NCBI GenBank assembly: GCA_011109175.1
Contig: RDEW01000005.1
Location: 678,335-742,334, forward strand
DNA from: Dicyema japonicum
Lineage: Eukaryota > Animalia > Dicyemida
Length of the DNA stretch: 64,000 bases
Reading direction: 5' to 3'
Part shown: positions 2,808 through 64,000 of the stretch, piece after piece
Numbering within the stretch: the first letter of the stretch is position 1
Layout of the letters: each line of letters begins with the position of its first letter
Translations under genes and position numbers: made by a program
Notes under the pieces: generated by a model
Database searches by the model: none
What the model saw: only the letters and a program-made list of their open reading frames with translations
Told to the model about the DNA's origin: nothing

Positions 2808-4293
2808 TCAAATTTGAGAAGAAAAATGAGGGAGTCCATTTGCACGTGCTGTTAGTACTTCACAGCCGTTTTCCGTGACAAGAAGGGTTTCTTCGAATTG
2901 TGCGGACAATTTCCCATCAACAGTGACAGAAGTCCAATTATCAGGCCATGACTGATCATGCCAACTACCTAACCATCACTCCAACCCCAACCTTGGTTAA
3001 TCATAGGCTCTATAGTGAACACGTGTCCCGCCTTCATAATCCCAATGGCTCTATTATCTACCAATAAAACCTCGACAAACTCGCATAGTGAGGGACATTA
3101 GGCATCGTATGAAATAATCTAAATTAAACCAACAATCTAACAAAACATAAATTAAAAAATAATATATTAATATAACAAATTAAAAAAATAAAATTATTTT
3201 TTAAAGTGACGAACCTGTGTACTCCATGACCAATATAAGTTCTAACAACGGACAAACCGGACGCACGTGCGTGTCGTTCAATAATATTGCCAATGTCCCT
3301 GTAGCGCTTTCCAGGACGAACTAAAATAAGTAGGACCAAACCAAAGTCGATAGCTTTCCAGAGACACTCGTGAGTGGTGGTAACTAGCTTCTTTGCCTCT
3401 GGACTTACATTGCCCACAAAGACAGTTTCGTTCAGATCCGCGTGGAATCCTCTGTGGAAGACAGTCACATCGACTGCTTATTACACCACAAAACACCATT
3501 CAAAATGTCTCCATCCTCCAGAGGTCGGAGATCAGGAATTCCGTGGCAGATGCACTCGTTTACCGACCTGAAAATTATCAACATTCACACGTGCAAGCAG
3601 ATTTAGGGAATCCACGGTAATTTAAAGGAGACGGATAGCAGTCACGTGCAATACAGGCCTAATGTATAAACAAGGACAAACCTCGTGTACAATTCGATCA
3701 ATTTCGTCAGTTGTTACCCCGATGGCAACCGCATCAAGTGCTTCGTCAAGGACTTGTCTACCAAGCTTAACTAATATATGAGTTGTACTTTGCCGGCTAT
3801 TCTCATCTCCTGGATATCTTCGTCATTGAGGATCACAATATCACGTGGGGCTTCAGATTCACAACGAGAAGCACCTTCATATTATTTGGAATTTTAAATA
3901 TAATTTTTTTATTAAATTAATCAATAAAGATAAATATGAAAAAAATATAAAAAATTCAAACCATATGGGTGATCGGCGTAGTCAGGCCTCATTATATGGT
4001 TAGGGACATCTTTTAAGGGAGTCTAATATAACTGTATAAGTACTCTTGGGAACGGTCTGAGGCGTCCTGAAAAGTCGTAGTTGGGCCATGGATTAAAGAC
4101 TTCTTGCTTTTGTTTGGAGGAATGGATTGATTTGTGTGTAGCCCAGTTGGACTTGAAACATTCCTGGATAAAAACACGACTAACTTGACCTACAGAAGAA
4201 TGAGTTTTTTATTCCTAGTTTACTGCATGTTGGACAGCGGAAATTTGCACGTGCATTGCAACCAATGCATGATTCACTCCCATTCTCATTCAT
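2808..4293 (-). CDS. METAP1: Methionine aminopeptidase 1 (about 12 exons)
   Basis: The spliced model gives the N-terminal zinc finger C..C....RCPTCSKLG...FFCSQECFK..W..HK and the motifs [67 protein letters not shown] and [11 protein letters not shown]. Introns are 21-23 nt plus 87 and 96 nt. One extra G near 4190 is needed. Confidence 0.97.
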
Positions 4294-4368
4294 CAAACTT
4301 TAAGCCGCAGGAACAACGTGAAAATATAATTTTAAATATTTTATTTATTAAATTGCTAAAATTAAATT

Positions 4369-4626
4369 TTAATTAGTTAATTTATAATTATTTAAAAATT
4401 CATCAATTTCATTTTCATCTCTGAAATAGCAAAACCAAGCCAGAATAGAGAAAATGCACATTCTTACTACAAATTTCTCGTAGAATGGCATATCAAAGTT
4501 CATCTTTTTGTTTAAAGTCTTCATTTCTGATTCAGCAAAGTCCTTCGGGTTAAATCTGGCAACTGTATGCTTGTTCTGACATTGTCTCACAATTTTATAT
4601 GATATAACCGGTAGATTTCTGAACAT
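4369..4626 (-). CDS. UQCC4: Small mitochondrial membrane protein, CCSMST1/C16orf91 (UQCC4)-like
   Basis: 85 aa ORF with a basic N-terminus and P(F/W)Y...TM...WFCYFRDENEIDEFL, resembling WCYLREESEADQWL of human C16orf91 (recalled alignment). Confidence 0.65.
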   Translation of the reverse strand: MFRNLPVISYKIVRQCQNKHTVARFNPKDFAESEMKTLNKKMNFDMPFYEKFVVRMCIFSILAWFCYFRDENEIDEFLNNYKLTN

Positions 4627-4699
4627 TCACAACAAACTTATTTGAGTTATTTTGAATTTATATTTAATAAAATTTAATTAAATAATTTAAATATTAATT

Positions 4700-5640
4700 T
4701 CATCTCAGGATTCTATTGAGATCGTCGAAAAAGACGTCCACCTCGTTACTGGCGGAGAATACTAAACGTCCTTCCAATCATGGAAATACCTTACGGAACG
4801 TCACCAGGACTTCTCAAGATGGCAAAGTCTCCCTGACCATTTCCTCGGACCGCACATCAGACTATATGGGACGCCAGCCCGAGATTTTGAGAAGAAACCT
4901 TCCCCCGCTGTGGAGATTAATCCAGGACTCCAAAACTAACCGCAGGGAAAAGGACTGGTATGGACTCGGGATCATTTTATTAGACGATAACTTTTATCCT
5001 CTTTCTCGTGATTTCGGGGTTAATAAAATAAAATTACTAAAATGGTTATTTGATTACTTTTATTCCAAGAAGTATCACAGTCCATGGCTAACAAACTTCC
5101 TTTCCGGAAGACTGGGTCATTTATGTTATCATTCCCACATATCTCGATTGTCTCCCAGTTTTAACAAACATGTTGAAAGTATTGAATCCAAAGAAAAACG
5201 AAAACTAAACATCCTCCTCGTAATAGCCGGTCACTCAAACGGCTAGACTTATTTTACTGTACAAGCAATTCATTAGGACGACGTTAACCTATGCCTTTCC
5301 AAACTGCTACCTTGCATAGCGTTCTCTCTCCTATAAAAGTTGCAGGAGGTCCGAAACTCAGAATTGAGCGCTGTACATTGGGTGTTTTGAAATCATCTCC
5401 CGTCGGGCGCTTACAGTTGCATACCGTCTCTGGGTAACCACCTTGAATAGAAGAACTTGCAATTTCTCTCCGACAATCACTTGAGTTACAATCCAACCTT
5501 CCCATTGCTTATACCTGCAAACCTTAGACACATACAGAGAACAGTGACTGATTTCGAAAGAACACTAAAAAATCCCTCCTCTGACAAAAGACCAAACCTG
5601 GACTTAATATATACATGAACTGCTTATTCCAAGGGCTATC
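4700..5640 (+). mobile_element. Two decayed Ingi/Vingi-like LINE 3' fragments
   Basis: C-terminal KKPSP..LI motif and 3' GGGATCA motif at about 4966; WLTNFLSGR; YKQFIRTTLTYA. Confidence 0.55.
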
Positions 5641-6039
5641 AAAGTTGAACTTTCTCTTTTTCGATGTTGCCATCATCCGTCACTGGTTGGGGGAGAGGTT
5701 GGGATATTCTTTGCTTACCTGGACTTTCAGGACTTGACGTCAAAGTATGAATCTCTGGGAGCTCCTGTTTGAGCAGCGCGTTTTTTGGCAGTTGCCAGTT
5801 TCCATATGTTAGCGAAACTGGGGTAAATAATTTAATCCTATAATCTAATATGAATATGGAATTTAGTTTTTTCGTGAGGATGCACGTCTGAGGCGTCCTG
5901 AATAGTGAGGATGTAAAAAATGACAAACTAATCATTTATCAATTTTTTAAAATTTTATGTTAAAAATTAAATAGCATGTCACAGTCTGATAAATCGTCAC
6001 TGTTCACAGATTGAATTAAAAAATATTTAGAATATGCAC

Positions 6040-6610
6040 CCGCTGTCCTGCAGAAGAAGCGCCGGAAGGGGACCACTTCATGCCGCTCTGAATGATGTGA
6101 TCGTCAGAGCTCTCTGAAGGCTTTCAGGCTTCCCAGCACAGCTTGAACCAGTGGGTCTTGATCGAGGAGATGGGAAGAGACCTGACGGGATGACCCTTTT
6201 CCCCTTCACGTCTGGAAGATCTTTGGTCTGGGACGCAACTTGCATAGACACGTTCTCAAGCACGAAACATTTTTAAATCTGTTCAGACACCTTGAGCAGC
6301 TGCTTCGACCGCGGAAAACCTAAAAATCAAGAAATATTCTTGCCTCGAGGATCGCTACCGATTTACTCCTGTTGCGACCGAATCATCGGGAGCCGTTGGT
6401 CCAATGACGCTGAATTCTTGCAAGAACTCGGAGGATTGCTTGCCAGAAAGAAAAGGGATCAACGAGAAGGGTTATGGCTAAGACAAAAGATTGGAATAGC
6501 CATACTCCGAGGGAACTCGTTCGCAATCACGCAGCAGGCTTCCTCAACTGACATTTGTTTAATTGTTAAAAAAATTTTCGAAATAGAATTAAAATATTTT
6601 TTTTGAAAAA
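6040..6610 (+). mobile_element. CRE-like non-LTR retrotransposon 3' fragment (Zn knuckle end plus REL endonuclease)
   Basis: LSCRRSAGR..H.ALNDVI and [32 protein letters not shown] motifs; near-identical to 72-410. Confidence 0.85.
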
Positions 6611-6696
6611 AAAGAATATTTAAAAACCATTGGAATTTACAAATTGTATTAATTGAGAAATAAAATATCTATAAAATTAATTAAATTAAGCGTGCT

Positions 6697-6903
6697 GTGG
6701 AGACAACTGGAACTGTAGGCGAGAAGACGGAGGTTTTTCTCCACAGCATTGGAAGCAAACTCGCCTCAAAAATGTGCGAGCCACGGGAGGGACTCTGGTC
6801 AAGGCAGAGGCTCGAAATGGCGATTATCAGAGGTAACGTCTTCGCCATTCTGTCGTCCTAATTATTCCCTAATTTTTATTATTTAAAAACAATTTGATTT
6901 CTT
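6697..6903 (+). mobile_element. Short 5'-truncated CRE-like fragment with probable target-site duplication
   Basis: AVETTGTVG.K...FL..IG.KL.....EPREG.W.RQRL.MAIIRGN. Flanked by TAAATTA(A)GCGTGCTG at about 6682 and 6904. Confidence 0.65.
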
Positions 6904-7394
6904 TAAATTAGCGTGCTGAAATGCGTCTGCTGTAAATTTCAAGAGAAACCTTGAAAAAAATAAAAAAAATAAAGGAAATGAAGGAGGAGTTAAACATTTT
7001 AAGACGGGAAAGAGATCGTTTAAGGTCTCCTGCTGAACGCCTGTGCGTGAATAAACGATATCGTTTCCGTAAACTAAGGCTGAGTCCGTCCCATACCATA
7101 AGTATACTAGTCGGCCAATATCTGGAGCTCTCCGTTGCGAGCTTGCTCTGAGGCAGAAATTCCAAGGGTCATAGTTTCAAAGCTCAGCAGACATATCCAA
7201 GAGGCCTAGTCGCTGGTGTTGATTGCTTTATAAATTAATGATGTGAGGCATTCAACAGCGGGAATTCGAGCGGCCTTTGGTATTCTCAGTGGAATCCGTC
7301 TACCTTTTCGACTCTACGATAGGCGTAGCAAAAAGGTTCGATTTGTCCAGAATAAAAGGGATGACTGAATTTAACCAGATGACGGCATCGAGCG

Positions 7395-7545
7395 GGGTCG
7401 GCATACACACAGTATGCGCAGTCCCATTTTATAGAGATCTCGCAGCCAATTTCGACATTCGGACACACCCGATGTGGAAAAATCTCTCGCAAAATGTGCA
7501 ATTCAACCCGTACTTTTTCGCGTTGCAATATCCACAAGACACCCA
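7395..7545 (-). other. Disrupted PHD-finger coding remnant, probably a LINE N-terminus
   Basis: CGYC...YGLNCTFCERFFHIGC...(frameshift)KWDCAYC gives a C4HC3 pattern; embedded in the TE nest. Confidence 0.5.
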
Positions 7546-7799
7546 CTGCTCTTTCGATCTCGCAGGTAAAATAGTATTCCTTCGAATGTAACGTGATCCA
7601 TTGATGGACAGTGAACAGACTCAGACTTGGCCTGATTAGTTTTCTGCATGTTCTTTTCTGATTTTCCTTTCTTTTTCTCTTCTTTCTTCTTTCTTCTCAG
7701 CACCACAACGACTAGCGGCGGTAAATATTACTAATTTTTGTTATTGTGAAAGGTATCTCAAAAAATTTGAAGACTTAATATACACAAGACCAATTCCCG

Positions 7800-8800
7800 C
7801 ATCCACATAAACAAAAGGACTAAAGTACCGAATAACAATAAAACACCATCTGAAATTTCTAAACTCAATACCTGTAAATCCCTAGAACTTGACGGAATGC
7901 AAACTGTTCAACGTGGGGATTATCAAATAATAAACTTAGTAGACGCGTTCCACAGAAGGACAAATAGGTGTGGTCATTGGTGACCGACGGCCAAAAAAGA
8001 CTCTAGCCGAACAATTTATTCACATTACAAGATCAGGAACTGTCCCAAACAATCATCGACGATCTATGGGAACTTTTCTGATAATAATTGTGTGATGGAA
8101 ACGTATTTGATGGAGGAATCCCCGAAATTTTGAGGAGAGCCATGAATAACCCTTCCGGTTGTCTACAACGCCGACCTAACAAAGATCAATGGTAATCTCC
8201 TCACAGAAGATCTGACAGCCTACGAAAAAGGGCACGGAACAGGGAATCCTGTAAGTTATTTTTCAAGAGTTATTGTCGAATTAAATGATCCCGGTATTTA
8301 TGCCTAATTTCCTCCTACAGTCTTTGTTAATCCCCGTAAATGAAAAAAATCCTTCTCGCATATTGGGAAAACTTAAATTCTAAAGGGATGATCTGAAGAC
8401 TTGACAATTTTGAGGAACTGTCAATTACGTCAACTGATTCATAATTGGGACGACGTTTAAGGTTTTCCGAATAAGAGTCCTTTTCGAGAGTGGCAATAAG
8501 ATTCTAAGGCATCGGTTCTGCATCACATGCTCTGCGTCAATAACAGGCTGCAGCAGGTATAATGGACGGTAGTTCCAACTAAAGGATGGAAAATATGAAA
8601 AAGTGCAAAAACAAAAGATGCATCAGGTTCAATGTCTTTTGCACAGCTCATATCGCATCCAGGATCTTCGACGTCTTTCTGCAATAACGAGGTGGTCAGC
8701 ATTAGACAAAAGGATTGAGTTCGGGGTAACTGAATGGGAAGATCACTAAGAAACGTGTTGAACAATGTTGTATATAATAGGCATTCTTATGGGACCACGT
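7800..8800. mobile_element. Decayed LINE RT fragments (plus strand 7800-8500; minus strand 8520-8800)
   Basis: KLNTCKSLELDGM resembles KSPGPDG; FNTFLSDLP on the minus strand. Confidence 0.45.
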
Positions 8801-8875
8801 TAAAGATGATTTTCATTGATGAATATTTCAGTGTGGTTGCAGTCTTTGCAGATATTTAATTTATGTTGTTATCGT

Positions 8876-8935
8876 GGTGTCATGTGGCTCACCAGAAATG
8901 GTGTCACCCATTCCGAAAAGGAACGAAAAGAGCCA
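8876..8935 (+). ncRNA. Candidate HDV-like self-cleaving ribozyme at the LINE 5' end
   Basis: P1 GGTGTCA/TGTCACC (6 of 7 pairs), P2 TGGCTC/GAGCCA, P3 CCA/TGG, P4 TTCC/GGAA and J4/2 CGAAAA occur in HDV topological order. L3 (GAAA) is shorter than canonical. Confidence 0.55.
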
Positions 8936-9006
8936 ACAGCTTCTCCCCACCGGCAGGTAATCCACTCGACTCGTGTGTCTTTGACCCTATCTGGTGTCGT
9001 CATTTG

Positions 9007-9057
9007 TCCAGACTTCTGATTCTTTTATGTGGAGACGTCGAAACCAATCCTGGGCCA
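9007..9057 (+). other. 2A (StopGo) ribosome-skipping peptide motif
   Basis: SRLLILLCGDVETNPGP matches D(V/I)ExNPGP and sits immediately upstream of, and in frame with, the APE start. Confidence 0.85.
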
Positions 9058-11974
9058 TAGAGAGATTTTACAATTATACAACTGAATACGAATGGATCTG
9101 GAGGAAAATCTTTGAACTCCGGGCACTCCTCCGCGAAAATAGGGCTGATCTCGCTTTAATACAGGATTCCAAGCTATATACACAGTGATCCGTAAAGATC
9201 GTCAGGAAAGATCGTCAGGGAAGACGTGGAGGAGGACTACTTACTATTATAAAGTACGATATTCCCTGTATAAATACAACTCAACGAACCTCAGAGCTTT
9301 TTAGCACCGACAAGACTTTGGAGCAGATTACTGTCAAAATCGAGTTATTCCCGTCCTTTTGGATCCATTTGGCTAATTTATATATTCCCTTACAAGGATC
9401 GTGTCCGACATCTTACACCCCTGATTTATCACGCATTTCAACATTGAAAAATCTACTGTTATGTGGAGATCTTAACGCACGACATCCAGTTGGCTCACTT
9501 CGCATTCCTCTGATAACCGAGGAGAACTCATTGCAAATTATCTTCCTGACCTGATTATACCGAACAACCCTAACTCACATACGAGGACTCCATTAAGGAT
9601 ATCTGATAGCTGCACATCCCCCGACTTAACACTATGCTCACCTTCCTGGTTGGAATCATTTCCTGGAACGTCTTTTACAGCTTTTCCAGTGACCACAATC
9701 CAATCCTTCTAAAATTGAGAGGTCTTCGACGATACAGGAGACGGCCGGCGGAATCAAAAGATTCAAGGATTATGCGAAGGTAGACTGGTCCGGTTTCAGT
9801 AACCTTGTGGATAAATTCCTGGCCCGAAGAATATCCTTCCATTCAGAAAGCTGACCATATTTTTATTCCTGTATCGTCATACAAGAAGTTTATTCTTACC
9901 CTCAGCTCTTATACAATAAGTCTTATGAAACAAAGAGACCGGTTGAAGAGATGCCATTTGATGGACCTGGAATCCTTGACAGCCATCAGACAACTAAATA
10001 AAAGGATCTGTAAAAAAAGAACACGAGGACAAGAGATGGCAAGAGATGGCAGTATCTAGTTAACCACCTCGACAGAAAAAATTCATCCCGACATTTGGAA
10101 AACTCTTAGACAAGTCAAGTCGGCGCTGGATGATACAGACGGAACAGGAAAGCCTTCTTCTCTGAACACTTATGCCACATCCTAACACCCTTATGAAACA
10201 TTACGTTGGATTAGCTTCAAAACCTTCTCGAAACACCTGGACATTAAGGTGCGTGCCCATGAACCGAAGAAGGAACTTACCACGAACTATTCAGATGACA
10301 AAGTCTTGGATATTATCACCAGATTAAAGAGCTCACGGGCGTGCTGGCCTGACAATGCATCTTTTATTCACCTAAGCCACTACACAATTGGCTACCTCAC
10401 GCAAATATACAACCTGTCCATTAAATATAATATTATTCTCAAGATTTGTAAGAATTCTACTATTAGACCGATATTGAAGGCTGGGAAACCAGAGACAGAA
10501 CCTGCCTACAGGCCTATCTCTGTTACCAGCACACTGTCAAAAATTATGGAGAAACTTGTATTATCAGTCATTATTCCGTATCTTCCACGTCCTATATTTC
10601 AACATGGTTTCCTCCGCGGTAAGTCCACCGCTACATACTTGGCTACCCTATCGCAGTTCATTGCCGACGGTTTTAACACCCATCCCCGCCTCACAAACGC
10701 ACAATCTTGGTTTCTATTGACATCAACAAAGCCTTTGACACTGTTTCGAGGAAAATCCTGGTTGGAAAAATATTTTCTACTAATATTCGTCCGAATGTGA
10801 AATTATGGCTGGCCAACTTTTTGTCTGGAAGACGTGGAAGAGTAGTCAGTGGTGATCTCAGATCTAGATCACGATTACTACCGAACGGGGTACCCCAGGG
10901 GTCTCCACTTTCACCAATTCTATTCAACTTATTCCTACACGACCTACCTAATGATGGAGACGAAGATTCCCTGCTATTATCCTACGCAGACGATGTAGTC
11001 ATTGCAATACGGAACCGATCGACGCAAGTCGCATCCTTTAAGATTGAGGCAAAATTGAAACTCTACACGATTGGATTGTTGGCAATCGACCTACGATTTC
11101 TGCAACCAAGTCTGTTTGTTCCATTTTGACTTCGGACCGTATTTCTAAGGATGAACCGAGTATCTTTATTGGTCCCACTCGGATTCCAATGACAAGGTCC
11201 CCCACTGTCCTTGGAGTCAAGTACGACAGTCTACTCAATTTTAACTCCCACGCAAAAAACATGATTACCAGGGGCCTCCAGAAAATTAACGTTTAACGCG
11301 CCCTTGTCCGGAGGAGCCCGAGGAATATGGACTTTTCTGTTTCTACCCTTTACCAACAAACAATCGCACCAGCCGTTGAGTATGCCTCCGTTGCATGGAG
11401 ATTAGCGCTATCGGAGACTATGGTCCACAGAGTCAACTCAATACACCAGAAAACCATCAGTATGCTTTGCTCACGTAATGGATCAACAGTCTACCCACTA
11501 CTCATGGAAGCTAAGACCCGTAGTCGTGGTCCGGATTTCTTCGCCTGTGAGGAAGATTCCGCTTCGCCTGATCCTTCCATGGCAAGAGAAAACCGATTGG
11601 ATAAGAAATTCCCCTCCCCGATCGGATTCCTCTGCAAGACCGAGAGAAGACTCTTCCGGAAAGTAGTGGGGACATGGAAGATCACAGACGTCGAATGGCA
11701 CAATGATTGCGGGGACTGGGATCACCTAACTGTTTGACTCTTTTGTCTTTCTTTCTCGGTGTTCCCGGGGTTATTAAAAATAAATAAAAATAAATAAATA
11801 AATTATCGGACTTGAATGAAGTGCCGTCCATGGGAAAACCCCTCCAGATGGTTGTTGAAACAGTATTTTTAAAAGAAAATAAAGTACATTTAATGTTGGC
11901 TAACAAAGAAAAATTATATATTAATCGTGCTAAACTTAGATGACTTTTCAATTTCTCATAAAGTGAATGTATTA

Positions 11975-13745
11975 TTATAGGCAACTATCGTAGAAACACC
12001 ATAATTGGTATATTTCCACGCGGCACTTAAAGCAATTTGTCGGACATCCCTCCTGTTACACGCCAAACTTCTCATAGCATCCAGATCCTCCCCACTTACG
12101 AACCTCCGGTTGATTGCCTCTCATCCAGCACCCCCGGTAGCGTAGTACGCGGGCGCCCCCGATATTTCTTTCCACTTGCAGCGAAATATTCCTCCATCGC
12201 CATATTTGCAGGTGATGTAGGGTCCATCCGTAGAACGTCTCCAAACAGTCTCCATCAAGCCTCCACCACATCCCAAGTCACAGGTCGCGTTGAGCACTTT
12301 CGCTACAGTACTTCATTGTTGATCCGTGTCGGCCATTGTACCCCGCACAGTATTCGTAATTGCCTTCAGTGGAAGGAGTTAAGATTCTTGGTTTCTGAGA
12401 CTGAGGTCCCCATGCAGGAAGAGTTATATAGCAGGACCGGCTTCACGAAAGCATTGTAGAGGCGCAAACGAAGCGCGATCGTCACCAGTCAGTTAGCCAA
12501 CCAATCCGTCTTCAACCTGTTTGCGAGTAGTTTTCCTCCGGGTAGTGTCCTCATTGTCCCGAGGAGGGAGCCGAGCTTTCTGGAACGTATTCACTGTAAG
12601 AAACCATTTCCCAAGCTCTGCAGGGGAAACGTCAAGTAACCTCCTCAAGGCTGCTTTATATTCCAAACGAAGTCCACATCATCAGCATATATAATTTCGG
12701 TGATTTGGCCATTATAAAACTTCTAAGACCACGCAGTAGTGCTTCCAGGTATACCACAAACAGGGAAAGGGAGTCCCCCTGGGGGTATCCACAGGAAGGC
12801 CTGTCTCTATTGCTTGTAGATTATGTTCCATAGATGCTCGATAGATATTTCCAGTGAAATGTGAAAAACATAATCTCTCGACTAGGTATCTTCTCCGTAT
12901 GACCTGAGGTGGCTTTGTTCCTGAAGTGCGTGCATAGCGACTTGTAATATCAAACAGGGCCACGACGATGTTGTGGTCGCTTTCCACGACGGCTGCTCCG
13001 TATGACCTCGAGTCCCGTAATAATGTTCTATCTGTCGGCAAAGAATGTAATCAATCTTATTGTAAATCATCACATGACCCCCAGATTCATTTCTTCTGCA
13101 GCTCGTCCAAGTAGTCTTATGTCGTGCAGCATGCGCAAACGCAGTGTTACACAGGAATAGACAAATGCCAGGCAGAAATTTATCAGCACAGCCCCCGGCA
13201 GGTTCCTGATCCCTCTTCCGTGTCTTCCGATAGTCGACCCATGTTCCCGACGTACTCCTGCTTTAGCATTCCAGTCTCCGGCAATGAAAACTAGAAAATA
13301 CGATTCCAGTTCGGCATATGTCCTCAATAGCTGCACGTAGAAAGCATCAAGTTCGTCCGAATCATTGGCGACCCGTCCACTGTGAGGTGCATAAACATTT
13401 ATGATTGAGGTAAGGGCCCTCGAGGTGCGTTTGTTCCCAACCCGTATTTGCAGTATGCTGATTCTGTCGTTAACACTCCAACACCGATGTATCCCACGAA
13501 CAAGTTTCTTGTGCACGTCAAACCCCTGTCTTGATGACGATGGTAGTTAAAATGAGTCTATAGTCTCCATGTAGCTCGTCCATACCAGCCTGTACTTTTG
13601 TCTCTTGTAGGCATCCCACGTCTGCACCACATCTTCCCAGATCTGAACATAACAGGTTTCTTTTCCACTCCTTGCTGATCCCTCTTACATTGAAAGGTGT
13701 TATTTTAATATATTCCAAGCGCTTTAAGTGCATTTCAGACATTTG
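11975..13745 (-). mobile_element. RTE-clade non-LTR retrotransposon with a large internal deletion
   Basis: APE motifs (FNVRGI, VGCLQETK, INVYAPHS, IAGDWNAK, IDYIL, ESDH) join almost directly to the RT core (G.PQGDS, IIYADDVDF) and the C-terminal RGRPRTTLP.VL motif. Confidence 0.85.
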
Positions 13746-16500: not shown

Positions 16501-16799
16501 AAATGAAAGAATAAAGGATATTTACTCTCGGTCTGATTATGAAGGAATTCAAGAGAAGAGTGTGAGCGAAGCGATACAATGTATATTGAAGAAAAAGAAA
16601 AGGACTTGTGATTATTGGGTGTACTTCCATGCAGTTGCTCGAAGAAGAAACGATTATTTATTTATTAACCACAGATACACCGAGAAAAAAGTTAAAATAA
16701 ACAACTAGTATCCAGTCTCCATTTCTACAGAAACAGAGTCCGGAATCAGCAAAAAAGAAAAAAGACATTCATTAATTGCAGTTGTGGAATCACCTCCAG

Positions 16800-16972
16800 T
16801 GGAGTGGGGGATAGCAAATGATCCCTTTTCGTACAAGCTTGGCAATGGGCGCCAGCTAGACAGGTGGATCCAATGACGTCACTCTAATAGGAAGGGAAAA
16901 AGGAGGAACAGACAAAACAAGCAGAAAACTTCAATCAATTAGCCACGTAGCACCACATGGGCCACGTGGCGA
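16800..16972 (-). repeat. Short interspersed element copy A (diverged)
   Basis: Shares the CGTGG..CCATGTGGTGCTACGT hairpin and GACGTCATTGGATCCACC with copies at 44945 and 57190. Confidence 0.65.
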
Positions 16973-22005: not shown

Positions 22006-22008
22006 ATA

Positions 22009-52450: not shown

Positions 52451-53590
52451 ATAAAATTTGGTTTTTCATTTAATCTTTCACATAAACAGGTGCACAGTGT
52501 ATCCCACGTGGGAAATTGTCTGTACACGAGAATGTGAGAAGTGCGTGGATCCTGAGAAGAACACCTGGGGAAGATAGGAGGCTACTGATGTGGGAATTTA
52601 TAATGGGAATGTCTTTCGCCTACGAGTTCCACAGAACGCCAGACACCCTAAGGATCTCTAGGAAGTGCGCATTTGGTAGTTACTTCCGCTTAGTCTCCGG
52701 TTTCTTTCACTTGAAGTGACGGGGGAACAGAATATCTACAAAATGGACTCAATAAGTAATTGGTCACCAAACTTGAGAATCATTACTGTTAAGAACCACG
52801 TATTCTGATGAAACACAAGTCAGTTTTAAGGAGAATTAAGAATTTTAACATTGGCATTATAATCCATAACGATTCTACTGGGATTTAGGGAGTAAAGCTA
52901 ATTAATTCAAAATAGATTGAATATTCTGAGTAATATTGATTTCCTCCTTACAATCAGTTTTGCAATTTTGTCAAACCACTCAAACGTGATAACACAAGTC
53001 AGGATATCTTAAAGTGCACATTCTAATCATCAAAACAAGCCAAAACCACAAAAGTCATTAAAATATTAAAAATTGAAAAATCATACTGAGAATACAAGTC
53101 ATTTGCCAAAAATTATTCCAATAAACACTAAAACCAATTACTTTGTTAGGACGCCACTTGTATCGATAACTTTTTTATTTCCAACCGCACGCTGTGAGTT
53201 ACAAGCAGGAAAGGCCACAGTGAGAGGCAAAACCCTCGAGACTATTACCTCTGCTGATTTAATTGCTTGATTACTAAAACGAGTAAAATTGTCCTATATG
53301 ACTAAACACGTTTAAACAAGCTAAAATCAGCCAATTTGGAAAATTATAATCGCATCCATGCTACAATCACAGTAATTATGGTTTTCATGTCACCTGCATA
53401 GCCTACATTTCACGAATAACTTATTTCCCTAACCAAGCAACAATCAAACAGTTGCCTTTAAAATGGCAGCAGGACAGACGCCAAGCTACCTATCAGGATT
53501 CCTTTCATGACCATAAATTATCAAAACAGAGAAACTTGTAATATTAAATTAGTGTTATACATAATTTACACATCAATATTGAATAATCCT

Positions 53591-55020
53591 CTACCGAATA
53601 TAATTATCCAACATAAGCACAGACTTTGAGCGGCTTGGGGGCTCGTTCGCATCAAAGAGGAGCCAAAACCTGAGGGACTCGTCTCCAGATCCCGTAACAA
53701 TTGTCCTCCCATCGGGTGATAAGGCCACATAGAGGACACGTGCACTATGCCCAGGTAGTTTAACCGTTGGAGTCATCAGGGGGTACTTCCACACGACAAT
53801 TTCATTAAGAGAATATCCGTGGGTGGTAACCAGTTCATTAGAGTTCTTCGACCACAACATGTTACATATTTGGGAGTCCGTTTGGTGATGAGAGAGTGCC
53901 TGGCCTGTCAAAGAGTTCCAGAATCGTATCTCCTGGTCAGCCGTTCCTCCTCCGGAAGCTAGGAGGCCTCGTTTGTGCGGGGACCATGCAAGGGCTTTCA
54001 CCGCGGCCCTGTGTTGAGTGAATTGATACGCCGGAGTGCCAGTGCTTCCAAATACGTCCCACAGGAGAAGGTTGTTGTCATTCCCACCGGAAGCCAGGTA
54101 CCTCCCATCAGGGGAGAACTTGATTCCACACACCTCCTGCTTGTGGCCAGCCAGAATACGGGTCTTCGAGCACATGGAATTGGAGTCTTTACATGAGTAT
54201 CCACCTGTTCGTAAATCTCTCAAAGAAATGGTTTTGTCACGTGATCCACTTGCCAGGACCGTCTCATTCCACGTGAGTGCTCCAATCCTGCTGCTATGGG
54301 ATCTGAAAGACTGGATCTCCTTGCCTTCCTCAATACTATAGATCAACGTTCTTCCAGTATTCGTTGCTATAGCAACATGGTTGTCCAAATGGGAGCAGGA
54401 GACAGAGCAAACGGTCTCGTTTCCAGGAAGTTCACACAGTCTGATCACTTCAGAACTTTGGGAATTCCAAATGTAAACGACCTTGTCAAGGGCCACAGCC
54501 AGGTTCTCAAAAGGGGACCAGTCCACAAGGCTCAAATAGAAATCATCCTTCAGTAGTGGAGCCTCCAGCGTCTTGAATGGGTTTTTCGAAATTTTCCGTG
54601 GTTTCTCTAGCACGGAATCCAGCATTTACGACTTTTTTCGCTCAAAACCGTGTTTTTCCATGCATAATAGTCCGTTTTTCCAGTCGGAATTTTACGCACG
54701 TGTTTAAACTCAAAGTAATTGGTGGTTTCAGTGAGTTTCTTGACCTCTTCTCTAGCCTCCGGAGCATAGGAATTGAGAGTCTCGTTGGCTAAGAGATCCT
54801 TGTAGACTTTATTCTCAGAAAATTCAGAGCTTTCGTCCAAAGAGTCGTCAGATTGTTGTATTTCGCTATTCGAGAACCAATCGATTGAATCTGAAGTATT
54901 TTTGGAGAGTATTGAAGGCATTAAACGTTCAGAATACAAATTCTTCTTCACTGGATTAGAGGGGGTAGAATCCTTCCCAATTTGACGTAATATTCGTTTC
55001 TCAAAACTGTCATCTTTCAT
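53591..55020 (-). CDS. FZR1: Fizzy-related APC/C coactivator Cdh1
   Basis: FEKRILRQI N-terminus, KISKNPFKTLEAP.L.DDFY, WD40 repeats (GHKQEVCG, LASGGNDN, AAVKALAWSPH, GGGTADQ, HSARVLY) and a C-terminal IR tail. Single 23 nt intron at 54607-54629. Confidence 0.96.
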
Positions 55021-55072: not shown

Positions 55073-56299
55073 TATAATTAATTTTTAATCAAAATATAAT
55101 ATTAAATATATTTTTATAACTTAAATCAACATAATATTGACATTTTAATTAATATTCATAATAAAGAAATACCAACCAGGGCACGTCAACCACAAACGTA
55201 TTTATGAACTAATTAAATATTATTATTATTTTTATTCATAAATATATTTTTTTATTTTTAAATATTATTTAAAATTCGTTAACATTAAAATTTATTTGAA
55301 ATTTTATTCTTAAGTGGTTCATGTATCATCAATATTACTGTCATAGCTGTGTGTAATTAAAAATCGATTATTCATGCTTTTAGAAGCGAAATATCCTTTT
55401 TGGATGACATTGTTCGTCATTATTCATTCGGTAACATCATAATTGTATTATTAAAATTGATTTTTTTATTTTTGACAATTTTTTGTATAAATAGTACATT
55501 CGGGATAATACTGACAACCGACAGCATTCCGCGGACGACTGAGATCCACACTACCGATCGTCCAGTACGAGAACCTCAAAAGATTGGAAGGTGTCTCAGA
55601 GAAGACTTTGTTTGACTACAAAAGCTTGCTTGTGACAGGAACAAGTGAGGGAGGATGACGTCGTGGTTAAATTCCAAGATTGCACGTGCTCTGCCCTGAC
55701 CATGCATCAGAAAGTACCTTGTTCTTCTCAAGGCATTACTTGTCCATGGGAGACTAAGCCACTGTCTCACCAGATATCGTTGATCAGCTCAGCCGTTTAA
55801 CCACTAGCTAATAGGTACCTGGGGTGACAATTCTGGAGTGCTGATCTTAGAATGTCTGCGGGCCTTATAGAAAAAGATTTTTTGGAGTCTTCTTTGAAAA
55901 TTAGAAAGAATCAGAGTTTTTGGACTTGAGTAGTAGAAAGATTAGGCAGTCAGATAGACATCATAAGCTCAGCATTTCGATGTGATCTCCAACTGCAGTG
56001 TCTTCGTCTCCCAGTATAGGAGGTCAACAGATATTTTTTATCGTGTGCCATCTATGACATGAATATGACTTGGCGAGTAGGTTCAGGAGCTCTCGGACTG
56101 TCGTCTTACGATTTTTTAAAAAACACGAAAATATATCTCAGACCTTCGAAAAAATGCTGACTATGCGAACTGATTTCCTTCGCAATCCTAAGAAGGAATA
56201 GCCACGCAATTTGAGGTTAAGGACCACGTGGATCATTATTTAACAAAATTAATAATTTTTAGGATGAATTAACGGATTCCAGAATTTTAGTGGAGATTT

Positions 56300-56700
56300 T
56301 TGAATTTTTTCCTCCATACAATGACTTCTAAAATAACTCAATGATTATAGAATATCTATCCCTCGTTACTCCAATTTGGGCAGACTGAATTCAAACACAG
56401 AAATTGGAGCATCCATGCTTCCCTATTTCAAATTGACTTTTTTGCGTAGAAGCGAACATTGCCACGTGTGATTTTCTGGTGAAGCTTTTAGGCGGTTCTT
56501 CGAAGTCAAATCCACACAAGGTCAATATCTCTTGCACGGTCCATGTTATTGCCTCAGATCTTCGCTGTCTTGATGCAATTATGAGGTCATCATAAGTCAA
56601 AATGATGGTGATCTAAGACATCTACACTCACCAAAAGCAATTATAGCCTCTTCCAACTCTTCCTGCTGCATGGGACCTCCTCAGCACGTCTAGATAATCA
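56300..56700 (-). mobile_element. Decayed LINE RT fragment
   Basis: TYDDLIIASR....A...VQE.L and KSHVAMF. Confidence 0.55.
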
Positions 56701-57189
56701 CAGATTTATCTGCTTCTTAATATGCTTGTCCAGCAGTGATGGTAAAGGTGCACGTGGGCGACAACAGTACTTCAATCCATGAGGAAGTCGTCCATAGCTC
56801 CATTGGCATGGTTCGACCATGTTATGAGTCATAAGCTTCATTTAAAATTCAACAATATCCAGACACAACCATCTCGCTGAGGATCTTGCATATAGTGCCT
56901 GTTCTTTATTTTGTTAGGTCATGTTACTCCACGAATTGTCCATAACCAGGATAAAGGGTAGAAGATGTCCACTCCTTGTTGTAAGAACCCTTTCAGTGGA
57001 GTGGGATAGAAAATTGTCATTTTGCGTTAAATCCTGATTCTGGGTGCCTCCAAAAACATGTGGATCACACGACGCCACTCTGTTAAAAAAGAAAGAAGAA
57101 ACAAATCTCAGTCAAGTGCCATATAACAGCAAGCGGCAATTCGATCTTATTTAATAAAGTGGCTTTTAATTCAAACTACAATGATAAAA

Positions 57190-57430
57190 TTATTTCCAAA
57201 GACCAAGGGTAACCAAACCAACTAACTTATCGATCCTGACTCGCTCCAGCATTCCAGAACTTGTCACCAGGTAACGACGTTGTCCCCTGGGAAGAATTGT
57301 TGAATCCTCTTGATGCAGGCCAGGCATTAGGCGTCTCCTCAGTAAGGTGGATCCAGTGACGTCATCGGAAAGAAAATAATTTTGACAAACTATCTACGTA
57401 GCACCACAAGGCGCCACGATGGAGTTAAAA
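57190..57430 (-). repeat. Short interspersed element copy C, flanked by a 41 bp direct repeat
   Basis: Identical ATTTAATAAAGTGGCTTTTAATTCAAACTACAATGATAAAA at 57149-57189 and 57431-57471. Confidence 0.85.
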
Positions 57431-58071: not shown

Positions 58072-58749
58072 GAACCACGTGAAGCAGATTTGATTTTTAA
58101 AATTATTTATTTATAATTAAAATATAATTCAAATTTTTTAATGATTGCTTATTTTAGACCTGATATGGTCGTTGGGGGATAAAAGATGCACCCTCAGTAT
58201 CAACTAACCAAGTGGTTAATCGGTCGAAAGATCAAAAAGTGACGTTCCTCCATTTCACTAAATGTTTACTCGGCTTCATGATGGATGAAAGCTTTTGTGA
58301 TTATTCTTGTAAGAATACGATAGGTGACTGATTCGGGAGATATCCGAAGCTTTGAACAATGGAAGTGTAGATGCAAGTAGGATTTGGGTTTGACCTCTAT
58401 ATTTCTTTCAAATTCTACACGTGGTATATTGTGGCATTTAAATCCGCTGATTTTTGCCATAAAGAAAGTTTGCTACCTAGTCCTGGTCTCCTTTGAAACT
58501 ACAGCCATGGAAATCTACTGCTTGATCCTGGAACCTTCACTGCTAGCCACTGGTTTCCTCCATTTGAAGGAACTGTTGGTAAATGAATAAATAAACCACA
58601 CTATATGTTAATTTTGAATGGGTATTGGATTCATTCTCAGTGTTATTATCCCCCTTTCTCAGAGTATGGTGGTAGCACAAGTAAAATTCAATTTCTGCTT
58701 CTAACAAAATTGTAGGACCTACGCATGGTTGCTGTGGGGATGTCTCATT

Positions 58750-59098
58750 TATTTATTTAATAACCCCGGGAACACCGGGAAGGAAAGACGAAAAAGTCAA
58801 ACAGTTAGGTGATCCCAGTCCTCGCAATCAATTGTGCCATTCGACGTCTGTGATCTTCCATTGTCCCCACTACTTTCCGGAAAAGCCTTCTATCGGTCTT
58901 GCAGAGGAATCCAATCGGGGAGGGAAATTTCTTATCCAATCGGTTTTCTCTTGCCATGGAAAGGATCAGGCGAAGAGGGTTTCCATCTTCCTCACAGACG
59001 CGAAGAAATCCGGAACCACGACTACGGATCTTAGCTCCCATGAGTAGTGGGTTGACTGTTGATCCATTACGTGGGCAAAGCATACTGATTGTTTTCTG
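58750..59098 (-). mobile_element. 5'-truncated copy of the 8875-11802 LINE with a 16 bp TSD
   Basis: About 90% identical to 11448-11800; GTGGGGATGTCTCATT at 58734-58749 and 59099-59114. Confidence 0.9.
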
Positions 59099-59376
59099 GT
59101 GGGGATGTCTCATTGGGTCTGAAAAAACGAAAGACGGTGAATCATGGAAGAAAGAAAAGTCTAAAATGAGTTGGTAGTTGATTCCTTAAGAGGAGAGGAC
59201 TTCCTCGATAATACTTAGACATGCTTCACTTAACCTCTAATAAAAATTCTCTGGAAAATGAAATTCTAATGATCATTCAATGTGATTGTCCCAGCAATTA
59301 AGGTCTTTTGAGAGCTGAGGAATACGTCAATTCAATCACTGTAAACAAAATGAACAGTAATCGCTAATAATATTAA

Positions 59377-59861
59377 ATGAGCGACAAAACTCCGAAACTG
59401 AGCACGTGAAGGTTAAATATAGGCTATAATCAAGATTGTGAGTAACACGTGGAATTTATTTTCGGGCAAATTACCAACTGTGGGATTTTGGTATTAACGG
59501 AACTTTTTGAAAACATCCCGCTTACAGAAATTTGTTTGATTTTGCAGCGGAAAATAAAGAGGAGCTAATTTTGGAGGAGAAATTCATAAAACATGCAAAT
59601 CGGTTTGCAAATTCCATCAACTTTGCGATTCAAAACATCGATAGCTTCGAAAATAAGGTAAGACCCCTGCTATTAGGACTCGGGCGGAAGCATATAAAAC
59701 AGAATGGATTCGAAGCTGAGTTTTTTGACAACTGTGTCGTACAAAACGTTCTAAAAAGCCAACTAGATGAGGAGTATACCAACTCTACTAAGCAAGCATG
59801 GGACCTCGTTTTAGCTGTTGTTATTGAAACTTTGAAGGAAGGAGCTCAATCGATGCTCTAA
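59377..59861 (+). CDS. Globin (single domain, about 150 aa)
   Basis: TW (A12), LFE.HP...LFDF (CD1 Phe), KHANRF (distal His), LGRKH (proximal His), AW..V. The 5' part needs one 23 nt intron and three single-base homopolymer corrections. Confidence 0.8.
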
Positions 59862-60431
59862 TAATTCATTAACATAAATAATCCAATTTATTTCGTAAAA
59901 TACTAATTACTCCCAAATCTGTGATCTTTGATGATTTTATTAGATTTGGCTGATGATCATTGACGTTTTTGAATCGAGTACATAAAGCTAGGGGAACCAT
60001 ATTTTCAAGTCAACTATAATTCCAATTCCACTTAATATCAACTTTCACACGTGTGACTCCCTATCCTCTTCTAACATCACCGGAAGTGGAGTTAAGGTTG
60101 ATAACATCCGTTGTAAGAAGGCGGAGAAGGCAAAGGAAAGAAATACCAAGGGTTTCTAGATTAATTGCTGCGAGGCAATTGGGAGATATAGAAAGTCTTT
60201 CCTCAGGACCCTGTGACGTCTGGACGCATTCAGAAGCCGAACAACCCAGTGACTCTTCTGTCGATCTCGATAGCTACCATGGGGCGAATTGTGAGCATTA
60301 ATTAACGTAAATTCCGACTACGTTAAGTTCACTAAACCTCCATAAAATTAAACTATTAATATTAGTATGTTTGTAAGTGTCTAATTAAGTGAGTAGTTCA
60401 TTAGTGTTGATCATTTCCACTATAATGATAA

Positions 60432-60878: not shown

Positions 60879-61746
60879 TTTGAGGTTGACGATAAAATTA
60901 TAGGCAATACCATCGTTTCTTTATATATTGAAAGACACGTGTATTATAGATTTATGGTTAGCTTCTAAAATAGTAATCAATTATCAAGTCAAACGTAGTT
61001 AGATTCTAAATTAGCATCGTAGCTTATTTTTAGAACTTGTTCGAATTCCAAGAGATTTATTTTATTACAAAAAATAAATCACACACCGGCCGCCAAGAGA
61101 CAGAAAGCATTTCTGCGAATGATTGCGATCCCATGAACCAATGCTGTTACCGAGGATCACCGAGTCTTGACAAGATTACACTTTCAATCTCTTGGAGAAC
61201 ACCTCTAGCGACAGTCCTGGCCCACTGAGGTCTAGAACACGATTGGATGTAGCGTAAAAGGTATTTCTAAAAATTATAACCAGATTAAATAATTCCTCTA
61301 ACAGATCGTAGTTCTCACCAAATTTTCAGATAATCAGAGTCCCTTAGTTATGAAATATTCGAGTTGACTGAGGTAGTCTTCACATTAACCAAACCATTTT
61401 TCAACTTAAAAATAGTGATTGCCCTTCCATACAAAAGCAGTAACTTGAACCTCCACTTAGGCAGGCACAATTTATTTTAGAAAGATAGAGCAGTTAGGCA
61501 ATTAATCACAGGACGACTAGAGTTTCCTGATCAACGTGCCAGGATATTGCTGAATTTCGAAGAGGCCTATAGGAAGCATATTACACTTTGACGAAGCAAC
61601 CTATGCCAACAAGTTTATGATAGAATACCTCATGGTGGATGGAAATACCGTGGTCAACCACATGTAACCTAAGTGCAGAACGAGTCTATTAAACTTCACG
61701 TATATACGGCAGCAAAATAAACAAAAACAAAATTCACCCAAAACAG

Positions 61747-63441
61747 TCAATGACAGTCAGTTGAGGTATTTCTGCTTTGAACAAAATATTTAAAGCCCAG
61801 TCCAACCGCGATCAATACAACCGACAAAATTGGGCCAAAATAATAAAAAGAATTCCAAATGGGAATAATATCTTCATAATCTTGGAGGATAAACGCAATA
61901 GACAAAAACCCCATTTGAGTCGTACGGCTAAACCAAAGGAACCTGTTAATAACCAAAAATGATAAAACCCATTGAATAAAAAATGACTCCACTTGGGTAT
62001 CAACCCATAAGTATGAGATACGAAGATCCTCTCAGACAACAACGAAACCGGGAAAAACAAAAATCCCATGAAATATCCAGGTTTCAGTCCATGCCAGTAA
62101 GCACTTATAAAAAGTGTAGCGAAAGACCGTAATCTAAGTAGAAATGTAGAAAGTATAAAAGTGTTAAATTTAAATTTATTTAATTTAAAAAATAATTGAA
62201 AATTGAATATATTTAAAATAAATAATTAAAAATGAAATAAAAAACCCGCCAAGAATAAGACATTGTGAGCAAGTAACTTTATTAACTTTTTAAATCTGCT
62301 ATAAACTGTAAAAACAAGCCAAAATTGGACAGTTCTATTCCATATTCTTGTAACTCCTTGAATCGAGGGTTCACTTTCACATTTAAAGACATCAATATTG
62401 TTCACAGTCTCGTAATTATACTCGTTGGCCTCTTCAAAGTCGACATCAAAAGATGTAGGCCCATATCCGACCTTAGGGCGACTTTCAACGGGGTAGGCTC
62501 CCAGACCGCAGCTCACACAAGCCAGCTTGGCCAAAATCCAAGCAAAGTAAAATTTTAGCCTCAAAGAGAAGAACACCACCATAACGTAGCAATACTTATA
62601 GAGAAATCTCGAATCGACGAATTCCTTAGTCCGTTCGTACTAAATTAAGTCATTAGTGACACCTTGACTGGGAACAGTACAGCCAGCGTAATATAAAGGG
62701 GTATTATCAGAGCCAACATCTTCAAGCCTGCCAAGACATAATCTCTCACAAATAGTCTTTCGAATCCCTTTCGGTTAATCACGTGGGAGAAACAGCGCAT
62801 AGTAAAGTACGGCCCTGAAATAGCCAAAGCGGCAAACCGCTGTAAAGTCCAATGAAGCAGAACGTGTAGCAGAAAAGGGGGGAGAAATCCATCTCGATGA
62901 AGTGATTCTTAAACTTAAGCTGATTAGCGTCCCCATCCAGAAAATCCGTTTCTTTCCATTCCATCTTACACCCCGATCGCAGTGCCTTCCAAAATCGCCC
63001 ACGTGATTGTGAACTTAGTAAGTTCGCCAAATCGTGAAATTCAAAGCTGGAGCCGATTATCTGAGATTATATTACTTAAACTCGCAAAGTAGTCAGCAGC
63101 AGGATCACGTTCCCCAATCTGTGCAGTTGTAAGTACTCCAAAACAATCAAAAGTCGCAATACTCCAATTATTAGGAAACACCAAATGAAACTACATAGAG
63201 CCAGAAATCTTAAATATTTAAATTTGATAAACTCGGTATGGAACTTCTTTAAAATTATATAATTCCCACAAAACATGACGAAAATGAAGTAAAAATATAC
63301 AGGAGAGGTCATCATTGTAGCCATGAAACCACATAATCCGATAAAATTGAGACGAGCTTTTCCATGGTTAATGAAACGGGAAAAGTATCCAATAAAAATG
63401 GACCCAACAAATATTAAAAAATAAATCGTTTCGTCTTTCAT
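61747..63441 (-). CDS. MBOAT7: Lysophosphatidylinositol acyltransferase (MBOAT7/LPIAT1)
   Basis: VFFSLRLKFYFAW...GLGAYP...GPT...EYNYETVNNID...WNRTVQFWL and YWHGLKPGY, as in MBOAT7. Confidence 0.9.
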
Positions 63442-63657
63442 TAGAATCCACCAGACGGGCTCTTCATTATTAATGTTAATTTATTCCAATTTTTGAAATA
63501 AAATTATTTTTAAATAATATAAACTTATTTAAAAAAAATATTTTTAGTCGCAAACTTATCAGTATGTAATAAAAATATTAATAATATAAATAAAAAATAA
63601 AATTAATTTTAAAAATATTTTCATCATTTGTTTATGTTGAACAAATTGCATAATTTA
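63442..63657. promoter_or_regulatory. Probable bidirectional promoter between MBOAT7 and RING1-like
   Basis: 216 bp, almost purely AT, separating two head-to-head start codons. Confidence 0.45.
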
Positions 63658-64000
63658 ATGCCATCGACGTCATGTTTGTCTGAAATCTTCATCGAAATGA
63701 AGTGCCCCATTTGCTTGGACTTCCTTACGGAAACTTATATCAGCAAAGGCTGTCTTCATAGATTTTGCAAAGTTTGGCGTTGATTTTATGCAGGAATGTA
63801 TTTTCACGTGCATTGAGTCTGGTCTTAGAGAATGCGCCATATGTAGGACTAAAATTATCTCCAAGAGGTCCTTGAGGCCGGATAGGAGGATGGACAAACT
63901 CATAAATAACATTCGGCCCTTTCACGTCTCAAATTCTGAAGTAAGCACGTGTTTCTCACAAGGACTCGACAATTTCGAAAATTTTTGTTAGACTCGCCCC
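63658..64000 (+). CDS. RNF2: RING1/RNF2-like Polycomb PRC1 E3 ligase (runs off the window)
   Basis: CPICLD.L..T...K.CLHRFC|.ECI....SG..EC.ICR.K..SKRSLRPD; two 22 nt introns. Confidence 0.82.

Follow-up and report, generated by a model that had tools for sequence, protein, structure and literature searches.

The hexamer CACGTG was the most strongly over-represented word in a 64-kb stretch of the genome of the dicyemid Dicyema japonicum (GenBank assembly GCA_011109175.1, contig RDEW01000005.1, positions 678,335 to 742,334; hereafter the window, in which positions are counted from the first letter), and its excess is indicative of a genome-wide mark on animal DNA that has not been described before. 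A direct count returned 45 copies, at precisely the positions given in a preliminary description of this DNA, none being missing or superfluous. At the composition of the window (38.0% GC; CpG observed/expected ratio, o/e, of 0.86), Markov models of orders 0, 1, 2, 3 and 4 predicted 8.0, 5.9, 9.1, 14.9 and 27.6 copies, respectively; the preliminary description had reckoned with about 7, a zero-order figure, and with a GC content of roughly 36%. By z-score, CACGTG stood above every other of the 4,096 hexamers at orders 1, 3 and 4, and the high-order expectations are themselves inflated because the motif feeds them, 45 of the 82 CACGT occurrences lying within CACGTG. None of 100 dinucleotide-preserving shuffles reached the observed number (mean 5.61, sd 2.21, maximum 11). 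The excess withstood the third- and fourth-order models and a codon-preserving null (see below), on which it had been staked beforehand.

The signal was sharply limited to six bases. CACGTG occurred at 7.6x its first-order expectation, against 0.55-1.66x for the nine classes of neighbour that differ from it by a single mutation; in the same first-order comparison no other CANNTG or NACGTN word came near its enrichment. The ACGT tetramer was not enriched (211 observed, 149-222 expected). All six positions were required, as in the exact core of a class-B E-box, and a perfect palindrome many-fold above Markov expectation is also what defines motifs of the HIP1 type, known from cyanobacteria. The sequences flanking the sites all differed (45/45 unique), and the sites are therefore not copies of one repeat; a dispersed repeat or a motif carried by transposable elements (TEs) was rejected on these flanks and on the lack of CACGTG in TE-homologous segments. 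The base adjoining the hexamer was C in 30 cases, G in 22, A in 20 and T in 18, against 17, 17, 28 and 28 expected (P=6e-4). C was thus favoured and T disfavoured, a bias to which codon context may contribute and which may resemble that of Myc/Max beside the core. Over the 45 sites, no convincing palindromic extension past the hexamer was detected, nor any convincing periodic spacing or short-range clustering. A repair signature was not apparent among the neighbours one mutation away, no class of which was significantly depleted; CATGTG/CACATG was nominally low in host DNA (o/e 0.71, vs 1.28 in TE DNA), on small counts and without significance. Rfam and tandem-repeat scans of the window yielded nothing relevant.

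The preliminary description had paired GACGTC with CACGTG, a pairing that did not hold. Its 19 copies (2.8x first-order) were explained at order 3, which predicts 15.6, and its enrichment in TE DNA (3.5x) was on a par with that in host DNA (2.4x), so that GACGTC was rejected as a partner and assigned to a lower-order GACG/CGTC bias. Certain other palindromic hexamers were markedly under-represented relative to first-order expectation, namely CCTAGG (1 vs 7.1), TCGCGA (1 vs 6.3), GCATGC (2 vs 5.8) and TCATGA (10 vs 27.5).

CACGTG was concentrated in host DNA. When 23.4 kb of the window were assigned to TE blocks and the remaining 40.6 kb taken as host, host DNA contained 44 copies vs 3.7 expected (12x) and the TE blocks 1 vs 2.2 expected (binomial P 3e-8, on a partition that is partly post hoc). 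Both fractions were near-identical in composition (GC 0.386 in TE and 0.377 in host DNA; CpG o/e 0.89 and 0.85), and the host/TE separation suggested earlier held at equal GC and CpG content. No site fell within 4254-16962 or 18140-23756, as had been reported; both intervals contain reverse-transcriptase open reading frames (ORFs) and repeats. A more objective TE marking, based on self- and cross-species tblastx, delimited about 6 kb with protein-level TE homology. These segments held 0 CACGTG, compared with ~6.5 predicted at host density, and among them were old fragments with no more than 39-61% identity to their relatives.

In host DNA, long open frames had 1.2-1.3 copies per kb and the DNA outside them 0.85-1.0 per kb, and this similarity implies that CACGTG is not purely a coding feature. 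Coding and non-coding DNA were assigned from the length of the longest open frame together with Pfam/PDB homology; a map of coding DNA from codon-usage log-odds was dropped, its signal being just 0.1-0.2 bits per codon. About one third of the sites lay in likely non-coding DNA, some of them upstream of start codons. The density was over-dispersed (variance/mean 1.5-1.9, P=0.01-0.03): the exons of METAP1, FZR and USP14 were the densest, with 7, 4 and 3 copies, while SMAD, lamin, globin and PAC4 had 0 internal copies, and pairs were found just upstream of SMAD, lamin and globin. Eighteen sites were confirmed in the last 10.3 kb. A rough hand tally of upstream windows, which together span about 5 kb, gave 9 sites vs ~5.4 expected at host density, and promoter enrichment was not significant.

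At the coding level, the motif was written into proteins chiefly through codon choice. A shuffle of synonymous codons that kept proteins and codon usage, over 5.4 kb of confirmed or likely exons, predicted 0.55 copies vs 5 observed, and 0 of 2,000 shuffles reached 5. Among amino-acid contexts compatible with the motif, 15 of 28 carried CACGTG as counted, or ~14 of 27 once a site read twice is subtracted. His-Val was encoded as CACGTG in 6 of 7 cases, where codon usage would give ~12%, and [SPTA]-Arg-[VADEG] in 7 of 15, where ~6% would be expected. The extreme codon choice at compatible contexts is a solid coding-level result. As the preliminary description had claimed, all three reading frames were used, and its statement that codon preference is not the cause is borne out by these frames, by the likely non-coding sites and by the survival of the excess under the codon-preserving null. 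Presence in all coding frames and in non-coding DNA is a further property of HIP1-type motifs.

METAP1 (2811-4299, minus strand; Pfam and PDB alignment) carried seven sites, as noted earlier, all of them exonic, five in the frame xCA-CGT-Gxx, one as CAC-GTG and one split by an exon/intron junction. The site at 2843-2848, in the last coding exon (xCA-CGT-Gxx), encodes T-A-R-A where human METAP1 has T-R-R-L; that at 3020-3025 reads CAC-GTG for the His-Val of the conserved GHVFTIEP, through synonymous choice; those at 3264-3269 and 3643-3648 encode A-R-A for human A-Q-A (HARAS for HAQAN) and A-R-D for human A-R-N (IARDC for IARNC); that at 3842-3847 encodes P-R-D (xCA-CGT-Gxx), and that at 4248-4253, in the N-terminal zinc-finger exon, A-R-A. 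The remaining site, 3588-3593, lies across a 5' splice site, as previously described: CAC closes the exon and GTG opens a 23-nt intron (3568-3590, minus strand, GTGTGA...TTTCAG), the removal of which restores the protein. Its length accords with the ultra-short introns described from Dicyema, animal introns below 30 bp being known only in myxobolids and D. japonicum (PMC13644364).

The four sites in FZR/CDH1 (53.6-55.0 kb, minus strand; Pfam) lay in frames 2, 1, 1 and 0. In the WD40 exon, 53737-53742 encodes A-R-V, where 30 of 40 homologues have Y-R-V; 54238-54243 encodes an invariant S-R-D as TCA-CGT-GAC, a purely synonymous choice; 54270-54275 gives L-T-W, which is L-A-W in 35 of 40 homologues; and 54697-54702, in the N-terminal exon, encodes K-H-V (CAC-GTG). 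FZR had 4 motif-compatible contexts compared with a mean of 2.4 in 119 homologues, 9% of which have at least 4, a weak excess.

In USP14 (~36.8-38.6 kb, plus strand; Pfam and PDB alignment), CAC-GTG occurred three times. At 37297-37302 it replaces Leu-Gly by His-Val in the near-universal Cys box G-L-x-N-L-G-N-T-C-Y, ahead of the catalytic Cys: the box (37282-37320, plus strand) reads GLHNHVNTCY vs GLTNLGNTCY in human, with the catalytic Cys kept. At 38117-38122 it encodes K-H-V, where human USP14 presumably has K-D-V, and at 38362-38367 T-H-V-G, vs T-H-Q-G in human. A TCA-CGA-GCC context in the same gene, one synonymous change from CACGTG, was left unused. Overall, the residue was replaced at 8 of 11 alignable sites; such replacements were rejected as stand-alone evidence, since the lineage departs from homologues at about 45% of its residues in any case.

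A second locus indicates that the excess is not confined to the window. The best match of the FZR exon was 68% identical and lay on a 75.7-kb contig attributed to Octopus sinensis, all other matches being ~53% identical. A 20.9-kb locus of this contig (VCDQ01011872.1 of GCA_006345805.1; hereafter L001, positions 1-20867 in the numbering of the locus) contains an FZR gene, LINE (long interspersed nuclear element) families common to the window and a syntenic neighbour gene, and the octopus-labelled contig looks like the DNA of another dicyemid species, a parasite included in the octopus assembly. L001 is mostly LINE DNA. It held 7 CACGTG, compared with 1.48±1.16 in shuffles (maximum 4; Poisson P ~0.001, hand calculation), and CACGTG was its top hexamer among those that are not AT-rich. 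Its FZR orthologue has one CACGTG, at a position that differs from all FZR sites of the window; individual sites therefore turn over while the excess persists. Homologue searches with the SMAD MH2 exon gave no matches, and those with the LINE reverse transcriptase returned only contigs of ~1 kb or less, so that neither added further dicyemid sequence.

CACGTG is the optimal class-B E-box of basic helix-loop-helix leucine zipper (bHLH-ZIP) dimers of the Max/Myc/USF kind, and both the identification as an E-box and the analogy with HIP1 in the preliminary description were judged apt. The reading that we tentatively favour, at somewhat less than an even chance, is that CACGTG would be a selected class-B E-box, read by a bHLH-ZIP protein and marking host genes. 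The perfect palindrome, the six-base sharpness and a preference limited to the flanking base suggest recognition of the duplex by a dimeric protein, and a sharp core with unique flanks suits a compact dimer site rather than a longer element or repeat. We infer a reader protein, selection as the maintaining force and a function. The motif would be recognised in duplex DNA by a sequence-specific dimer, most likely a bHLH-ZIP of the Max/Myc/USF kind, and selection would keep it very dense in resident (non-transposon) dicyemid DNA, and densest along the bodies of some of the small housekeeping genes. Such genes, of ~1.4 kb, with introns of 23-40 nt and surrounded by transposons, would leave little room for sites outside exons, and sites would hence come to lie in coding sequence, for the most part through extreme codon choice at His-Val and [S/P/T/A]-Arg-[V/A/D/E/G] and sometimes by a change of residue. 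Binding might lead to activation, or might keep host genes open and non-silenced in a half-repeat genome. Helix-loop-helix genes number 14 in D. japonicum, the second-largest transcription-factor family in a very reduced repertoire (PMC6736024, Table S5).

A selected, protein-read element fits better than a blind mutational drive on three counts: CACGTG is densest in the constrained exons of certain genes, old and young TE fragments alike are without it, and the neighbour words on which a repair drive would feed are not depleted. The persistence of the excess without shared FZR sites is as expected for binding-site arrays that turn over. The preliminary description had proposed a genome-wide DNA-level system, which might be a self-versus-TE mark, a methylation or repair target, a chromatin or segregation anchor or an elimination signal; action at the DNA level is upheld by the use of all frames, the non-coding sites and the codon null, while a uniform genome-wide drive fits poorly with sites that are over-dispersed, densest in the exons of particular genes and absent from both old and young TE fragments, and with neighbours that are not depleted.

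Several points weigh against a selected E-box. The density (~1 per kb of host DNA) and the invasion of exons far exceed those of any transcription-factor site known to us. The lower-affinity E-box variants CACGCG, CATGTG and CACGAG were not enriched. The sites of METAP1, FZR and USP14 are exonic and spread along the genes, without the concentration at the 5' end expected from the promoter location of E-boxes. The overwriting of the USP14 Cys box beside the unused TCA-CGA-GCC looks like a blind force rather than optimised placement. Two CACGTG of L001 lie within LINE ORFs, and TE exclusion is therefore not absolute in the second dicyemid. Moreover, the borders between TE and host blocks partly follow gaps in CACGTG and are partly post hoc, and the genes sampled number only about ten.

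Molecular drive would need no benefit of the sites: a methyltransferase, a mismatch-repair nuclease or biased gene conversion would turn near-variants into CACGTG in resident DNA. It would account for a hyper-abundance that extends to all three frames and to non-coding DNA, the pattern of HIP1 in cyanobacteria (PMC5861425, PMC4390886), and for the turnover of sites between species, and the coincidence of sites with replaced conserved residues, including those of the USP14 Cys box, suggests indifference to protein function. The CpG o/e of 0.85-0.89 indicates little methylation-driven CpG decay to erode the central CG, and the nominally low CATGTG/CACATG of host DNA, small as its counts are, points the same way. 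We nevertheless regard drive as unlikely, given that none of the neighbour classes one mutation away was significantly depleted, that TE-homologous DNA lacks CACGTG down to its old, diverged fragments, and that some constrained exons are denser than likely non-coding DNA and the density is over-dispersed, although a neutral drive should load unconstrained DNA most. No candidate enzyme, and in particular no methyltransferase for the motif or its core, was found within the 64-kb window, and hexamer-specific repair is not known to us from any eukaryotic enzyme system. Base composition, ACGT/CpG-context bias, codon usage or a dispersed repeat might have produced the excess as a by-product, all the more so as the first expectation was zero-order and GACGTC also looked frequent. 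This explanation is refuted by the first rank of CACGTG under Markov orders 1, 3 and 4, by the dinucleotide and synonymous-codon shuffles, none of which reached the observed counts, by the unenriched ACGT and unique flanks, and by TE DNA of the same composition that is without the motif.

A tag for somatic remodelling, a self/non-self code by which CACGTG-bearing DNA would be retained or amplified and untagged TE DNA eliminated or under-replicated, appears improbable to us. For dicyemid somatic cells, chromatin elimination, extrachromosomal circles and amplification, both selective and of the whole genome, have been reported (PMC6543705, citing Noto 2003, Awata 2006), and a retention tag predicts the host-rich, TE-poor distribution that was seen. 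However, the whole-animal assembly still consists of 49% repeats (PMC6736024), the motifs described as specific to dicyemid circles, longer patterns of 12-20 bp that occur once per 22 kb of the assembly, are distinct from CACGTG, and the absence of internal sites from SMAD, lamin, globin and PAC4 would be odd for a general retention tag. We give similarly little credence to a version in which CACGTG would be a sequence-encoded own-DNA tag, whose dimeric reader licenses retention, selective amplification or anti-silencing protection during the somatic chromatin diminution of these ~30-cell animals; transposons would be without it, and animals would have in this tag an equivalent of the self-recognition motifs of bacteria, strong enough to reshape proteins. 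A remodelling tag could share its reader with the bHLH-ZIP reading favoured here. Finally, CACGUG might act in RNA, its transcripts being bound by protein or pairing with one another between molecules, and the densest clusters do lie in exons of expressed housekeeping genes. A perfect palindrome would be needless for an RNA signal, about one third of the sites are likely non-coding, including some upstream of start codons, and one site is split by a splice junction and so absent from the mature mRNA; a role in RNA is accordingly very hard to credit.

The gene and transposon map of the window was drawn from Pfam scans of open frames and, for METAP1 and USP14, PDB alignments; it samples about ten genes, with partial gene models. 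METAP1, SMAD, FZR, USP14 and the lamin-like gene are intron-bearing animal genes. Apart from METAP1, FZR and USP14, Pfam identified SMAD (MH1 and MH2 domains, ~24.5-26.5 kb), a SacI-domain (Syja_N) gene, a PAC4 gene, a lamin-like gene, a globin gene and an MBOAT gene on the minus strand. Transposon domains comprised a Tc5/pogo HTH (1009-1335), reverse transcriptases (10677-11126, 20135-20596 and 30010-30396) and a DDE_1 domain (29177-29509). The D. japonicum genome, obtained from O. sinensis hosts, measures 67.5 Mb with 36.7% GC and 49% repeats and is LINE-rich (PMC6736024). Three repeat pairs were observed in the window, each without CACGTG: 77-401 and 6266-6588 (95% identity); 11444-11788 and 58748-59101, inverted (91.6%), a LINE fragment amid host genes; and 44950-45185 and 57184-57418, inverted (77%), a non-coding element of ~240 bp.

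Outside the three dense genes, the first sites belong to a 1.2-kb island between TE blocks: 16963-16968 lies in an unannotated ORF, 17919-17924 in unannotated ORFs on both strands, and 18134-18139 at the edge of the island. At 17039-17483, 76 bp from the first of these sites, the island includes an old LINE-like fragment that shares ~40% protein identity with other copies; the three CACGTG flank it and none lies within. Around SMAD, 23757-23762 falls in an unannotated open frame of 76 codons upstream of the gene, 24013-24018 and 24030-24035 form a pair 17 bp apart in likely non-coding DNA, ~430 bp upstream of the MH1 exons, and 26910-26915 is downstream of the MH2 exon, likely non-coding. The site at 28151-28156 lies in an unannotated ORF of 118 codons (minus strand). 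The sole site of the TE partition, 31172-31177, is at the edge of a DDE/reverse-transcriptase block, ~460 bp upstream of the SacI-domain gene and outside the TE-homologous segments, and 33456-33461 is within the span of that gene. Two sites upstream of the lamin-like gene are likely non-coding (42482-42487, and 42746-42751, ~100 bp before its first long ORF). They are followed by 47813-47818, in an unannotated ORF of 106 codons ~250 bp from a reverse-transcriptase-like fragment, by 49269-49274, 49631-49636 and 51189-51194, all likely non-coding, and by 52505-52510, in an unannotated ORF of 77 codons.

Beyond the FZR exons, 55683-55688 is ~640 bp upstream of that gene, with short ORFs only; 56225-56230 and 56751-56756 are likely non-coding, and 56463-56468 falls in an unannotated ORF of 73 codons. 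The site at 58076-58081 is in a 124-codon ORF (minus strand) of the unannotated gene that is syntenic with the locus of the second dicyemid, and 58418-58423 is unannotated. A pair 43 bp apart (59403-59408 and 59446-59451) precedes the globin ORF by ~65-110 bp, 60048-60053 lies in an unannotated ORF of 93 codons downstream of the globin exon, and 60936-60941 adjoins an unannotated ORF of 162 codons (minus strand). The last four sites concern the MBOAT gene: 62780-62785 and 63000-63005 are within its span, and 63805-63810 (unannotated ORFs on both strands) and 63946-63951 (unannotated) are on its 5' side.

A single hexamer is thus the strongest word-level signal in the DNA of the window and is common to two diverged dicyemids. 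Full-text literature searches turned up neither a CACGTG excess nor any iterated palindrome for a dicyemid or another eukaryote, in line with the earlier remark that no description in an animal was known, and the two dicyemid genome papers make no mention of it (PMC6736024, PMC6543705). If CACGTG is read by a protein, an animal that gets by on ~5,000 genes and very few transcription factors would have a regulatory or chromatin code of unusual simplicity, open to direct testing. A drive would make it the first case of a hexamer-specific bias of repair or conversion among metazoans, and a link to chromatin diminution would offer a molecular handle on a dicyemid process unexplained for twenty years. 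In practice, CACGTG distorts the codon usage and amino-acid composition of a lineage whose phylogenetic position is hard to resolve owing to its fast evolution.

Among known systems, HIP1 (GCGATCGC) shares with the dicyemid motif a short perfect palindrome at about one copy per kb, many-fold above Markov expectation, a presence in genes in every frame and in non-coding DNA, and the character of a lineage-wide property rather than of one locus. HIP1 is, however, a bacterial octamer tied to the orphan methyltransferases DmtA and DmtC (PMC4390886, PMC13756078), whereas the dicyemid motif, a hexamer with the very sequence of a transcription-factor site of eukaryotes, occurs in an animal nuclear genome and differs strongly in density from gene to gene. 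By analogy, the CACGTG system may work like HIP1 without being a member of it, its host having intron-bearing animal genes and not being a cyanobacterium. The class-B E-box (Myc/Max, USF, TFE/MITF, yeast Cbf1/Pho4) is identical in sequence and palindromic as for a dimer, but known E-boxes are sparse and located in promoters and enhancers; they are neither the top hexamer of a genome nor exon-filling, and are not known to overwrite residues of a catalytic motif as the USP14 site does.

The uptake sequences of Haemophilus and Neisseria (USS/DUS) and Chi of E. coli are short motifs found about once per 1-5 kb of core DNA and more rarely in foreign or mobile DNA, whose presence in coding sequence comes at some cost and by which cellular machinery tells own from foreign DNA. 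CACGTG resembles them in being dense in resident DNA, written into coding sequence and rarer in mobile DNA; they differ in being bacterial, non-palindromic and orientation-dependent, and serve DNA uptake or RecBCD. We know of no comparable machinery in animals and, to our knowledge, motifs iterated across a genome and into its coding sequence have been described in bacteria and in no animal. In E. coli, very-short-patch (Vsr) repair produces an excess of CCWGG, a palindrome-like site that rises without a function of each site. The T:G-derived neighbours are depleted there, unlike those of CACGTG, which are not significantly so, and no Dcm/Vsr-like pair is known to us for the dicyemid case. Overall, the closest analogues of the CACGTG excess are bacterial (HIP1, uptake sequences and Chi) and the E-box sequence itself is familiar, while the system behind the excess has a fair chance of being new.

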